Below, piece after piece: positions 44,922 through 63,835 of a stretch of 63,835 nt of DNA (position 1 is the first letter of the stretch; each line of letters begins with the position of its first letter). Location of the stretch: assembly GCF_030144855.1 (NCBI RefSeq), contig NC_082716.1, positions 10,974,166-11,038,000 of the forward strand, read 5' to 3'. Source of the stretch: Hypanus sabinus (taxonomy: Eukaryota). A program made the position numbers and the translations under genes. The notes below the pieces were generated by a model. It worked only from the letters and a program-made list of their open reading frames with translations, was not told the DNA's origin and did no database searches.

Positions 44922-45594
44922 TGTGCTGTCTTTATGACAGTTATTTAGTTTATAATATTTTCGCTTAGTAATTCATTCAATAGTATTTTCTAGTTAGAAT
45001 TAGAAGTGTTTAAAGTGTATTCATTGCATGTAAAATATATCGGCATGCGATGACGTCACATCCGGTTTCGCCGCATCTTGTGGGAAAACACCGGTTTGAA
45101 ATTAGCGCGAGGGTGGGGGCTTTCCACGAGGCTCACCTGAGCACAAGCAGTTTTGCAGGCATGAGAAATCACAGTGAGAGCAACGCTGTAAGTTAATAGA
45201 TAATCGATATATTGAACTAAGATGTTAATGCTGATCCTGTTAGAAGTAACGACGGTAGATAATGTTTATGCTTTCGTTAGTTAAAGAGTCGCGGATAGTT
45301 TGCATGGAAGTGTATTTAAAGTAGTCAATGGAGCAGGTAAACTCTCCCTGTATACTGCACCTTAGTGTAATGTAGTTATAGTCACCTTTGCAAGTATTTA
45401 CACTTGAAATGTGATATTAAGGAAGGAACAAATACTGTATCAATCTTGTATTGTTTTATCAACAGTTTTCACCATATGTTAATGTGAAGAGTGAACAGTA
45501 AATGGTTAATCTTACTGCGATCTGGTTTGCATTGGCTGTGGTTTATCCGGACGTTAAATTCGGCGTTTCGTTACACCCGAAGGAGAACGTTACA
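44922..45594 (+). repeat. 5' LTR of unit 1 (673 bp, TGTGCTG...GTTACA)
   Basis: Present as 8 full copies plus one partial; this outermost copy has 4 private substitutions. Confidence 0.95.
45051..45066 (-). promoter_or_regulatory. Overlapping ETS-CRE composite motif in the LTR (ACCGGATGTGACGTCA on minus), present in every LTR
   Basis: Perfect CRE palindrome TGACGTCA directly abutting ETS core CCGGATGT. Confidence 0.5.
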
Positions 45595-45604
45595 GTGAAA
45601 AAGC

Positions 45605-45817
45605 GGCATTATCAGGTGTTTCAAGTGCTGCAATGTCAGCTCAATCCAGCATCAAGTCGACGCCGCCCAGCGACAAGGGCAGTAAACCGACATCAAGTAA
45701 GCCCACCCAGGCGTTATCAGGTGTTCCAAGTGCTGCAATGTCAGCTCGATCCGGGATCAAGTCGATGGCGCCCAGCGACAAGGGCAGTAGAACGACATCA
45801 AGTAAGTCCACACAGGC
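45605..45817 (+). repeat. 105-bp tandem duplication spanning the gag start codon
   Basis: ggcattatcaggtgtttcaagtgctgcaATGtcagctc at 45605 repeats as ggcgttatcaggtgttccaagtgctgcaATGtcagctc at 45710. Confidence 0.9.
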
Positions 45818-59000: not shown

Positions 59001-62000
59001 TGTGCTGTCTTTACGACAGTTATTTAGTTTATAATATTTTCGCTTAGTAATTCATTCAATAGTATTTTCTAGTTAGAATTAGAAGTGTTTAAAGTGTATT
59101 CATTGCATGTAAAATATATCGGCATGCGATGACGTCACATCCGGTTTCGCCGCGTCTTGTGGGAAAACACCGGTTTGAAATTAGCGCGAGGGTGGGGGCT
59201 TTCCACGAGGCTCACCTGAGCACAAGCAGTTTTGCAGGCATGAGAAATCACAGTGAGAGCAACGCTGTAAGTTAATAGATAATCGATATATTGAACTAAG
59301 ATGTTAATGCTGATCCTGTTAGAGGTAACGACGGTAGATAATGTTTATGCTTTCGTTAGTTAAAGAGTCGCGGATAGTTTGCATGGAAGTGTATTTAAAG
59401 TAGTCAATGGAGCAGGTAAACTCTCCCTGTATACTGCACCTTAGTGTAATGTAGTTATAGTCACCTTTGCAAGTATTTACACTTGAAATGTGATATTAAG
59501 TAAGGAACAAATACTGTATCAATCTTGTATTGTTTTATCAACAGTTTTCACCATATGTTAATGTGAAGAGTGAACAGTAAATGGTTAATCTTACTGCGAT
59601 CTGGTTTGCATTGGCTGTGGTTTATCCGGACGTTAAATTCGGCGTTTCGTTACACCCGAAGGAGAACGTTACAGTGAAAAAGCGGCATTATCAGGTGTTT
59701 CAAGTGCTGCAATGTCAGCTCAATCCAGCATCAAGTCGACGCCGCCCAGCGACAAGGGCAGTAAACCGACATCAAGTAAGCCCACCCAGGCGTTATCAGG
59801 TGTTCCAAGTGCTGCAATGTCAGCTCGATCCGGGATCAAGTCGATGGCGCCCAGCGACAAGGGCAGTAGAACGACATCAAGTAAGTCCACACAGGCAAGA
59901 GCCAAGGCAGAAGCCGCCAAGGTGCGACTGCATTACGCCAAACAAAGAGGCAGTTTTGAAAATGAAACTGGCCACCAAAGAAGCCGAAAAGGCTGCCAGA
60001 CAAAGAGAAGAGGCTGCCAGACAAAGAGAAGAGGCCGCCAGAGAAGCCGAAACCCAGTTGGAAATGACAAAAATATCGACAGAGTTGCATGTGCTGCAGC
60101 TAGAAGGAGAAGGAGAAGCTGCCAGGGTGGAAGCAGAGTACATAGAAGAAGCTGAAGGGTCGCGTGATCTGACCGAAACAAGTTCTGCTTTGGAAAGGAC
60201 CAGACTGGAACGCACGAGCGACTATGTACAATATCAAGCAGACAGGCAGGCTCGTCTCCCCTCTCCATACCTATTCGATAACTTCCCCAGCTACGAGGAA
60301 GAGAATTTACCCTCGCGGCCCCGCGATGAAGTCAAGAATGAAAGAGCTGACAACCGATATACTTTGACACCAAAGTTACAAAGTTCGATGCGAAGAGACG
60401 CGGAGGTTGAATCCAGGATGGCAAATTCCATGAGAAACGTGCGTTCTCAGTCATATGGGCGCCAACGTACTTCTCCAGCCCGCATGCCGCTTGCAGCCGA
60501 TCCCACGCTGCAGTATTTAGCACGACGGGATCTCGTCACTTCGGGACTGTACCAGTTTGACGATAAACCCGAAAATTACCGTGCTTGGCTCTCCACATTC
60601 ACCAACGTGATTGACGGGGTCCAGCTCAGTGCAACCCAAAGGTTGGACCTTATGGCGAAATGGCTGGGGAAAGAATCACGCGACCAGGTGAGACGCATGC
60701 GTTCAGTGTACATCAACAAACCTGAGCTAGCCTTAAGCGAAGCGTGGGAGAGACTTTGGGAGAGATATGGGGCCCCCGACATTATTGAAGCGGCGCTATA
60801 TCGACGTCTGGGAAACTTTCCTAAGGTGTCAGCCAAAGATCACTTTAAGTTAAGAGAATTCGGAGATTTACTCATGGAGATCCAAGGCGCCAAAGAAGAT
60901 GGCTATTCAGCTGGTTTAGTATTCCTAGATACTCCATCCGGGATTAGACCAATTGTGGACAAACTTCCATTTGGGCTGCAGGACAAGTGGCTGACTGTTG
61001 CCTCAGAGTACAAGGAAGACCACGATGGTCGATTTCCTCCCTTTGAGCTCCTCACTAGGTTTGTGTGCAAGGAGGCGAAGAGGCGAAACGACCCTAGCCT
61101 TGTAGGTCCAGGAAGCAGTTCGATTTACACCAAGCCAGGCAGATCCGTTTCGAATGTTTTCAACATTGATAAACCCGTGTCAGTGCTCAAGACCGAAGCC
61201 CTTACAACTAACAACGACCCTGGCAAGTATTGTCCATTGCATAACAAACCTCACCCCCTGAAAGCATGCAGAATGTTTAGGGAAAAACCCCTTGAAGAGA
61301 GGACGGCTCTTCTCAAGGAGAAAAGAATATGTTTTAGATGCTGTTCCTCAACCTCTCACCTCGCCAGAGAGTGTACGATCGCCGTGAAGTGTCCGGAATG
61401 TGGCAGCCCAGATCACGTCGAGGCCATGCATCCCGACCTGTCACCACAAACCGAGAGCGCTCCTTCACCCCCACAACAGGACGGCGGGGAGGGAGAGGCT
61501 CACTCTAGGTCAATAGCTGTCAGCACGAACTGTACAGAAGTTTGCGGTCAAGCTCAGTCAAGTCGTTCTTGTTCCAAGATCTGCCTCACTAAGGTGTACC
61601 CTAAAGGAGCCAAAGACAAGGCCATCAAAGCCTATGTGATTCTGGACGATCAGAGTAATCGTTCACTAGTCAGTCCAGAGTTCTTTAAATTGTTCAACAT
61701 TGAGAGTGAGCGGTTCCCATACTACCTCAAAACTTGCTCAGGCAACATGAAAACCCAAGGAAGGAAGGCAGAAGGCATCCAGATCGAGTCCCTGGATGGT
61801 AAAGTCGTCATCTGTCTCCCTCCGCTCTTAGAGTGCAACGAAATCATGAATAACCGCGCTGGGATCCCGACACCAAGTGCGGTGCTACACCAGCCGCATC
61901 TCCACCACATCGCCAAACACATCCCAGAACTGGATCCGAAAGCGGAAATACTCCTGCTATTAGGAAGAGATGTTATCCAGGTACACAAGGTTAGGCAGCA

Positions 62001-63680
62001 GATCAATGGACCACTCAACGCCCCCTTCGCGCAACGTCTGGATCTGGGCTGGGTGGTGATAGGAGAGGTGTGTCTCGGTGACGTACACAAACCGATGGTT
62101 AACACACTCAAGACCAATGTGCTAGAGAGTGGCCGCCATTCAATCTTTCAACCCTGCCCGAGTGTCCCGTGCATCAAGGAAGCACAACAAGGCGTTAACA
62201 AGCGCGAGGCAAGCGACGAGTCGCTGGGCCAGTCAGTCTTCGCTCTAACGAAGTATGACGACAAACTTGCACAATCAGCTCAAGATACCATTTCTTTAAA
62301 AACCGAAGACACCAAGGTCTTCAGAGATGAAGCAAATAATGGGGTTGCCCCATTGCCTATCAGAGAACCATGCCAGCGCTCACCAGATAACAAAGAGCAG
62401 GCAGTCAAACGGTTCACGTCCTTACTGAAAACCTGGAAAAGGAAACCTGAGATACAGCAACGCACCCGATTGGCCCACGAGGTACTGTGCACCCTAATGG
62501 CAGAGGTCACAGCCATTATAAACGCACAATCATTCCTACCTGTGTCTTCTGACCCAGAAAACCCCTTTATACTTTCGCCATCAACGCTCCTTACGCAGAA
62601 GGCAGGAGCACCTCCGCCACCAGGAGACTTTTCAGACAAAAAGCAATGGAGACAAGTCCAGGCTCTGGCAAATCAGTTCTGGCCTCGCTGGAGACAAAAA
62701 TATCTACCTTTGTTGCAACAGAGACAAAAGTGGACAGAACCCCGCAGGAATCTTCAAGTTGAAGACTTAGTCCTGCTCAGGGACAAGCAAGCCGCTCGCA
62801 ACAGCTGGCCAACGGCCAGAATCACTGCTACATTCCCTAGCGAGGATGGACATGTCAGGAAGATCGAATTGAAGACTACCGACCAAGGCGATGTGAAAAT
62901 TTACCAAGGGCCAGTTACAGAAGTTATTCTACTTCTACCCAATGACTGATTAAGAGACTAAGTTTTGTACTCTGCTCATTGTGACCTTACGAAGGTCAAG
63001 CGGGGAGTGTGCTGTCTTTACGACAGTTATTTAGTTTATAATATTTTCGCTTAGTAATTCATTCAATAGTATTTTCTAGTTAGAATTAGAAGTGTTTAAA
63101 GTGTATTCATTGCATGTAAAATATATCGGCATGCGATGACGTCACATCCGGTTTCGCCGCGTCTTGTGGGAAAACACCGGTTTGAAATTAGCGCGAGGGT
63201 GGGGGCTTTCCACGAGGCTCACCTGAGCACAAGCAGTTTTGCAGGCATGAGAAATCACAGTGAGAGCAACGCTGTAAGTTAATAGATAATCGATATATTG
63301 AACTAAGATGTTAATGCTGATCCTGTTAGAGGTAACGACGGTAGATAATGTTTATGCTTTCGTTAGTTAAAGAGTCGCGGATAGTTTGCATGGAAGTGTA
63401 TTTAAAGTAGTCAATGGAGCAGGTAAACTCTCCCTGTATACTGCACCTTAGTGTAATGTAGTTATAGTCACCTTTGCAAGTATTTACACTTGAAATGTGA
63501 TATTAAGTAAGGAACAAATACTGTATCAATCTTGTATTGTTTTATCAACAGTTTTCACCATATGTTAATGTGAAGAGTGAACAGTAAATGGTTAATCTTA
63601 CTGCGATCTGGTTTGCATTGGCTGTGGTTTATCCGGACGTTAAATTCGGCGTTTCGTTACACCCGAAGGAGAACGTTATA
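59001..63680 (+). mobile_element. BEL/Pao LTR element unit 4 (LTRs 59001-59673, 63008-63680)
   Basis: Unit-3 haplotype plus a 1-bp insertion. Confidence 0.95.
59712..62949 (+). pseudogene. Unit 4 polyprotein with +1 frameshift (extra A at ~59944-59946)
   Basis: gccaaacaaagagg versus gccaaacaagagg in other units; the downstream frame becomes continuous with an LTR-internal ATG at 59581 (1122-aa ORF). Confidence 0.75.
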
Positions 63681-63835
63681 TGTGCTGTCTTTACGACAGT
63701 TATTTAGTTTATAATATTTTCGCTTAGTAATTCATTCAATAGTATTTTCTAGTTAGAATTAGAAGTGTTTAAAGTGTATTCATTGCATGTAAAATATATC
63801 GGCATGCGATGACGTCACATCCGGTTTCGCCGCGT
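63681..63835 (+). repeat. Start of the 5' LTR of unit 5 (cut by window end)
   Basis: gttata|tgtgctgtctttacgacag junction identical to the previous three. Confidence 0.9.

Follow-up and report, generated by a model that had tools for sequence, protein, structure and literature searches.

Directly abutting long terminal repeats in a small tandem array of BEL/Pao elements on an Atlantic stingray chromosome

At the right-hand end of a 63,835-bp stretch of the genome of the Atlantic stingray, Hypanus sabinus (NC_082716.1, positions 10,974,166 to 11,038,000 of the forward strand; hereafter the window), a retroelement bounded by long terminal repeats (LTRs) is repeated head to tail in such a way that each complete LTR directly abuts the next, without a single intervening base. 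The locus is a small, recent array of a BEL/Pao element, non-autonomous as judged from its predicted protein, that was amplified as DNA from one LTR-LTR junction of the type seen in extrachromosomal circles, and it is a single example, of five units. It lies internal to a 114.9-Mb chromosome (114,876,599 bp) of assembly GCA_030144855.1.

The architecture follows from the positions of the LTRs. Nine copies of 673 bp each, the ninth clipped by the window end, were located by repeat finding and direct reading, with starts at 44922, 48949, 49622, 53649, 54322, 58328, 59001, 63008 and 63681. The start-to-start spacing is 4027 bp and 673 bp by turns, which means that two LTRs, with 0 bp between them, separate consecutive internal regions. 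The order is LTR-internal-LTR followed immediately by LTR-internal-LTR, in units of 4700, 4700, 4679 and 4680 bp (U1 to U4). At the four junctions (49621/49622, 54321/54322, 59000/59001 and 63680/63681) the complete U5 end of one LTR abuts the complete U3 start of the next, and the junctions are identical: a 21-mer spanning the joint occurs exactly four times in the window, at 49610, 54310, 58989 and 63669, where chance would predict none. This order, its coordinates and the four identical zero-base junctions had been proposed in an earlier, sequence-only reading of the window, and the 21-mer count and the nine LTR starts bear that proposal out. The LTRs begin with TGT and end with either ACA or ATA, and a polypurine tract, AAGCGGGGAG, stands directly 5' of each 3' LTR. 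The units, with the state of their main open reading frame (ORF), are laid out as follows.

44922-45594, plus strand: 5' LTR of U1, the left edge of the array, directly after host sequence; ends in ACA and carries four private substitutions
45595-48948, plus strand: internal region of U1, 3354 bp, with an intact 1085-aa ORF at 45633-48890 and the polypurine tract at its 3' end
45880-46010, plus strand: hypervariable run of imperfect 21-bp repeats within gag's coiled-coil region, which separates type A (U1, U2) from type B (U3, U4, U5)
48949-49621, plus strand: 3' LTR of U1, ending in ATA
49610-49630, plus strand: LTR-LTR junction 1, with the joint at 49621/49622, U5 end against U3 start, 0 bp between
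49622-54321, plus strand: U2, 4700 bp, type A; 5' LTR ends in ACA, 3' LTR in ATA; ORF broken
51652, plus strand: lesion in the U2 ORF, a C to A change that creates a stop at codon 440
54322-59000, plus strand: U3, 4679 bp, type B; 5' and 3' LTRs alike end in ATA; intact 1078-aa ORF at 55033-58269 (P0127)
59001-63680, plus strand: U4, 4680 bp, type B with a 1-bp insertion; 5' LTR ends in ACA, 3' LTR in ATA
59944, plus strand: the 1-bp insertion of U4, which shifts the canonical frame
63681-63835, plus strand: first 155 bp of the 5' LTR of U5, clipped by the window end; U5 reaches ~68360 in window-equivalent coordinates

Two look-ups at the junction itself came back empty: a 39-aa ORF spanning it has no database record, and the 21-mer, written with Y at its variable base, has no match in metagenome or viral contig collections, neither of which includes the stingray genome, so that a null was expected.

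Units beyond the window, like the other loci of the family, were judged from listed gene positions and not from DNA. The NCBI annotation places five 'uncharacterized protein' genes at the locus. The listed positions coincide exactly with U1 to U4, and the fifth gene marks a further unit just past the window (ORF at window-equivalent 64392-67628) whose protein is identical to that of U3. There is no sign of a sixth unit: over the ~9 kb that follow U5 on the right no other gene of the family is listed, and the array comprises at least five units, probably exactly five, over ~23 kb. Five units with none further within ~9 kb make an array too short to be called a macrosatellite, and that term, used in the sequence-only reading, was too strong. 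The same reading had suggested looking for other arrays as opposed to solitary copies. Exact-protein look-ups at nine other family loci, of which eight are in H. sabinus and the remaining one is in H. akajei, show all nine to be solitary, with no other family gene within 10 kb. Neither a further copy of the element nor a solo LTR turned up when the left 44.9 kb of the window was searched. The array is thus a one-off event at one locus among the family copies sampled.

Several simple routes to a tandem arrangement were considered and rejected. Unequal recombination through a shared LTR, and equally an origin from circles with one LTR, predicts a 4027-bp period with one LTR between internal regions, and the observed unit lengths of 4679 to 4700 bp do not follow it; the sequence-only reading had also judged these routes a misfit, correctly. 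Duplication by way of a flanking target-site duplication would have left a spacer where 0 bp is seen, and exact tandem duplication of the LTR alone would need breakpoints falling precisely at the LTR ends. Double insertion at one target, leaving a target-site duplication between units, had been discounted on similar grounds, and no such duplication is visible between adjacent LTRs at any of the four junctions; the variant in which it is hidden within the LTR terminus survives as a rival and is weighed below.

The units are not identical (they lie 2 to 15 substitutions apart, with additional indels of 21 and 1 bp), and their differences speak to how they multiplied. All four 3' LTRs end in ATA, whereas three of the four 5' LTRs (those of U1, U2 and U4) end in ACA. 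In the established retroviral model of reverse transcription, a single minus-strand strong-stop DNA is the source of both U5 copies, and a fresh cDNA therefore has matching LTR ends. Because reverse transcription cannot regenerate the asymmetry between ACA and ATA within three separate units, these must be DNA-level duplicates of a single founder; and because the joint between ATA and TGT is the same at all four junctions, they trace to a single founding junction. The later amplification of one founding junction, as the sequence-only reading had it, is supported on both counts.

Beyond this common origin, the units fall into two haplotypes: A, comprising U1 and U2, and B, comprising U3, U4 and, by protein only, U5. 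The two are distinguished by a complex change in the imperfect 21-bp-repeat stretch of the gag coiled-coil region and by two single-nucleotide polymorphisms (SNPs). Neighbours are most alike, with 2 substitutions between U3 and U4 as against 15 between U1 and U3, and the block order along the array is A-A-B-B'-B. Contiguous blocks of this kind are better accounted for by stepwise unequal exchange than by a single rolling-circle burst, from which private differences only would be expected.

This is the evidence on which a rolling-circle origin must be weighed. In that alternative a concatemer spun off one circle with two LTRs (a 2-LTR circle) enters the chromosome in one step, either through homology to a copy already in place or through end joining, and the differences between units accrue later by mutation and gene conversion. 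It would account well for the identity of all the junctions, for the near-identity of all but one of the nine LTR copies (of the ninth, only 155 bp are visible), and for an array that begins precisely at an LTR end with a distinct left LTR. The private changes it predicts are star-like, however, and what we see instead is A-A and then B-B'-B, with a complex patch and two SNPs held in common; moreover, to our knowledge no replication origin or mechanism has been described for such circles in vertebrate germ cells. We therefore consider a rolling-circle concatemer unlikely, and of the two modes of copying offered by the sequence-only reading we retain unequal exchange, in stepwise form, over rolling-circle copying.

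The haplotypes also invite the suggestion that independent linear cDNAs were joined end to end, head to tail, in the manner of injected transgenes, and then integrated as a single block. That A and B differ in a region that is hypervariable at the level of the family is what separate source RNAs might produce, and the oligomeric integrated retroviral DNA reported in 1987, taken up below, also speaks in its favour. At the same time, independent cDNAs would each have had matching LTR ends and would have met in variable joints; the four identical joints with ATA, taken with three 5' LTRs ending in ACA, largely exclude this origin, and we regard it as highly improbable.

A further irregularity marks the left edge of the array. 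Four of the five private variants of U1 lie within its 673-bp 5' LTR (binomial P ~0.002), two of these four substitutions being CpG to TpG/CpA changes of the kind left by CpG decay, whereas the remaining eight LTR copies, the ninth again being visible over 155 bp only, have a single private variant in total (Poisson P ~0.004). Such an excess in the leftmost LTR suggests that the left edge is older than the rest of the array, or that it was never homogenised with it.

How, then, might the founding junction have arisen? When full-length linear cDNA is end-joined, whether into a 2-LTR circle or into a head-to-tail dimer, the outcome is a blunt joint between an entire U5 end and an entire U3 start. 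A 2-LTR circle or end-joined cDNA is accordingly the best, if unproven, reading of the junction, and we infer this origin, as we do the capture by homology and the part played by the ATA end that are set out below. Overall, we believe that the most likely history, and one to which we give somewhat more than even weight, is that of a real chromosomal array arising from a resident copy, homologous capture of a 2-LTR circle and stepwise unequal exchange. In this history an older copy of the element already occupied the site, and its 5' LTR would be what remains today at the diverged left edge. A young 2-LTR circle from the same family would have recombined with that copy by homology, placing the LTR-LTR joint between two internal regions. 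Unequal sister-chromatid exchange, or replication slippage, between the resulting 4.7-kb units would then raise the copy number step by step and leave the order A-A-B-B'-B.

The bases at the joint may add to this history. At all junctions the TG on the U3 side is intact, and at four of four the U5 side reads TA instead of the conserved CA. A change of CA to TA at the U5 end is expected, from general integrase end requirements, to disable that end as an integrase substrate; studies by Colicelli and Goff in 1985 and by Murphy and Goff in 1992, named here for comparison and by title only, reportedly concern integrase ends. Speculatively, then, ATA in place of ACA may be the reason why integrase left that cDNA end unused and why the cDNA finished in a joined form, and it may also, no less speculatively, be why the junction is not recut and stays stable. 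A fuller version of this idea, in which a cDNA of the non-autonomous element with a defective U5 end (CA to TA), unusable by integrase, closed into a circle through end joining, recombined homologously in the germline with a copy already resident, so fixing a 2-LTR-circle junction in a vertebrate chromosome, and was multiplied by unequal exchange, is one that we advance tentatively, as a possibility with the weight of probability against it. If true, capture of defective-end cDNA would constitute a natural, integrase-independent route from retroelement cDNA to tandem repeat.

The founding junction could instead reflect a double insertion, in which a second element integrated exactly at the end of the resident 3' LTR, its target-site duplication hidden in the last LTR bases, with unequal exchange following. 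Double insertion with unequal exchange is a documented route for many tandem transposable elements (PMC5932611), and amplification at the DNA level is established at this locus either way. Nonetheless, such an event demands that integration hit a single exact nucleotide; GAAACC, the host flank on the left, is unlike the LTR end, GTTATA, and gives no sign that the LTR end mimics a preferred target; and no reason for the ATA end is provided. We give double insertion little credence.

Several observations weigh against the history that we favour, of homologous capture followed by stepwise exchange. A variant private to U1 at unit position 3902, far from the 5' LTR, is left unexplained by a single crossover, and the difference between A and B, being a complex patch in a hypervariable repeat, needs an extra event, such as gene conversion or slippage. 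The nine other family loci, being solitary, reveal no wider propensity of the family in favour of the mechanism. Downstream of the 5' LTR we recognised no canonical tRNA-type primer binding site; there the sequence (GTGAAAAAGCGG, window 45595-45620) is without the usual TGG start and was matched to no tRNA. The last LTR, the right flank and any target-site duplication fall outside the window. Finally, the array is known at the level of assembled sequence, and a run of 156 N at 43958-44113, 808 bp to its left, represents either an assembly gap or deliberate masking; in the former case, the array would sit near a contig edge.

These last points bring up the prospect that the array is an artefact of assembly, with a single or dimeric copy inflated, or with reads from a circle or concatemer stitched onto a chromosomal copy. 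Near-identical 4.7-kb repeats close to a run of N, in a sequence supported at the level of the assembly only, are what such an error would look like. A collapsed or looped read path would not, however, create the ordered, unit-specific 21-bp indels, the 1-bp indel, the private SNPs and the pattern of ACA and ATA ends, and the locus is internal to a 114.9-Mb chromosome in which a fifth unit and then non-array sequence lie beyond the window. We judge an artefact to be quite improbable.

Regardless of how the junction was founded, the element itself can be placed. Direct LTRs with TGT...ACA termini and the homology of its polyprotein assign it to the BEL/Pao lineage. The 1085-aa ORF of U1 consists of gag-like sequence, the part of the polyprotein that precedes reverse transcriptase (pre-RT) and the C-terminal DUF5641 domain of integrase, and Pfam recognises in it a weak gag-type DUF1759 and the integrase-tail DUF5641 only, with no match to RVT_1, Peptidase_A17 or rve. 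For comparison we used P0010, a full-length BEL/Pao polyprotein of 1892 aa that has RVT_1, Peptidase_A17, rve and DUF5641, to which the window ORF is 58% identical over 857 aa. Residues 101-939 of the window ORF align to P0010 41-892, and residues 921-1054 to P0010 1742-1879; an in-frame deletion of ~866 residues (P0010 ~876-1741) has thus removed the reverse transcriptase, the Peptidase_A17/RNase H region and the integrase core. On this comparison the units are a non-autonomous BEL/Pao deletion derivative with no reverse transcriptase, RNase H region or integrase core of its own. The sequence-only reading had called the elements complete, which the deletion contradicts; it had also called them still coding, which holds for the gag/pre-RT/integrase-tail ORF in U1, U3 and U5, where it is intact, and fails in U2, where it is stopped, and in U4, where it is frameshifted.

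The deletion is not confined to H. sabinus. The U1 ORF is 97% identical to a Hypanus sabinus protein in a 90% cluster of 47 members, and the same deletion breakpoint recurs in proteins of Hemitrygon akajei that are 69-76% identical (P0004, P0006, P0007). A breakpoint common to Hypanus and Hemitrygon points to an old non-autonomous family of two stingray genera, and with the reverse transcriptase and integrase core deleted this family must borrow both from autonomous relatives such as P0087. Many family copies retain an ORF of ~1050-1130 aa with the same in-frame deletion. The family has apparently long retained its gag/pre-RT/integrase-tail reading frame, which raises the question of whether the protein is required for the family's own mobilisation.

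Some smaller features of the coding region deserve mention. A 125-aa ORF at 45502-45879 begins within the LTR and runs into the first part of the main ORF, overlapping it; the U4 insertion at 59944 joins the frame of this short ORF to the main frame, giving an ORF of 1122 aa at 59581-62949. The start of the main ORF (45605-45818, and repeated in each unit) holds a 105-bp tandem duplication, in two copies that are 88% alike. The coiled-coil stretch encoded by the 21-bp repeats varies in length among units and among family members, P0126 having 40 extra residues.

In the left 44.9 kb of the window an ORF at 10100-10579 has an ALKBH8_N-type Pfam match (E = 4e-9), and no other ORF of at least 130 aa in this part has any Pfam match. 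A (GT)39 microsatellite lies at 32953-33030. Dispersed repeats at 2762-3659 and 15242-16149, ~12.48 kb apart, are 81-90% alike, with related copies in inverted orientation, as at 41783-42230; further transposable elements, or else a duplication of local origin, are the probable explanation.

Set against known systems, the stingray locus shares some trait with each of several classes of tandem or circular element. Tandem arrays of LTR elements with a shared LTR, sited at one locus and expandable by unequal exchange, are well documented (PMC5932611; PMC7215508). Like them, the stingray array consists of head-to-tail LTR elements at one locus; unlike them, with their one LTR between internal regions, it has two complete LTRs at each junction and a 4.7-kb period. 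[quoted passage not shown] There, as here, LTR is joined directly to LTR, but the Drosophila junctions are calls in a supplementary table only, whereas the stingray array is resolved to the base, in a vertebrate, and has one junction amplified. Double-insertion tandems (R1, P element, Bari1-like) have in common with it a dimeric founder and subsequent unequal exchange (PMC5932611), and differ in retaining in their junctions a target-site duplication, of which none is visible in the stingray array.

Multi-copy placement of DNA at one site without integrase offers another point of comparison. [quoted passage not shown] Head-to-tail transgene concatemers are, in the part of the source available to us, an experimental analogue of such integrase-independent placement (10.1101/603381). 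Several head-to-tail copies of linear DNA at one site are thus a likeness between these cases and the stingray array, as far as a title and a partial source convey; on the same footing, the oligomers and concatemers are experimental and somatic, whereas the stingray units were duplicated from a single junction and not joined independently.

The nearest counterpart of the junction itself is found outside the chromosome. LTR-element cDNA regularly, if only as a minor product, yields 2-LTR circles with 0-bp overlap (PMC12951756), and in these circles, as at the stingray junction, the U5 end abuts the U3 start with neither overlap nor spacer. The circles are episomal dead ends, whereas the stingray junction is chromosomal, heritable and multiplied, and has ATA on its U5 side instead of ACA. 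A partial literature search returned no description of a vertebrate chromosomal array of two-LTR units resolved at the sequence level, which is absence of evidence only. LTR-LTR junction reads and divergent PCR are in wide use as markers of extrachromosomal circles and ongoing transposition (PMC12951756), and a chromosomal two-LTR array would give the same circle-junction signal in the absence of any circle, a warning for assays of this kind; two-LTR arrays also mislead the dating of LTR pairs and the annotation of LTR elements. Arrays of LTR elements are usually explained by LTR recombination that leaves one shared LTR, and the stingray locus shows a different founder, a blunt joint of U5 to U3 of the sort met elsewhere in dead-end 2-LTR circles, and shows too that such a joint can pass from one generation to the next and multiply as DNA.

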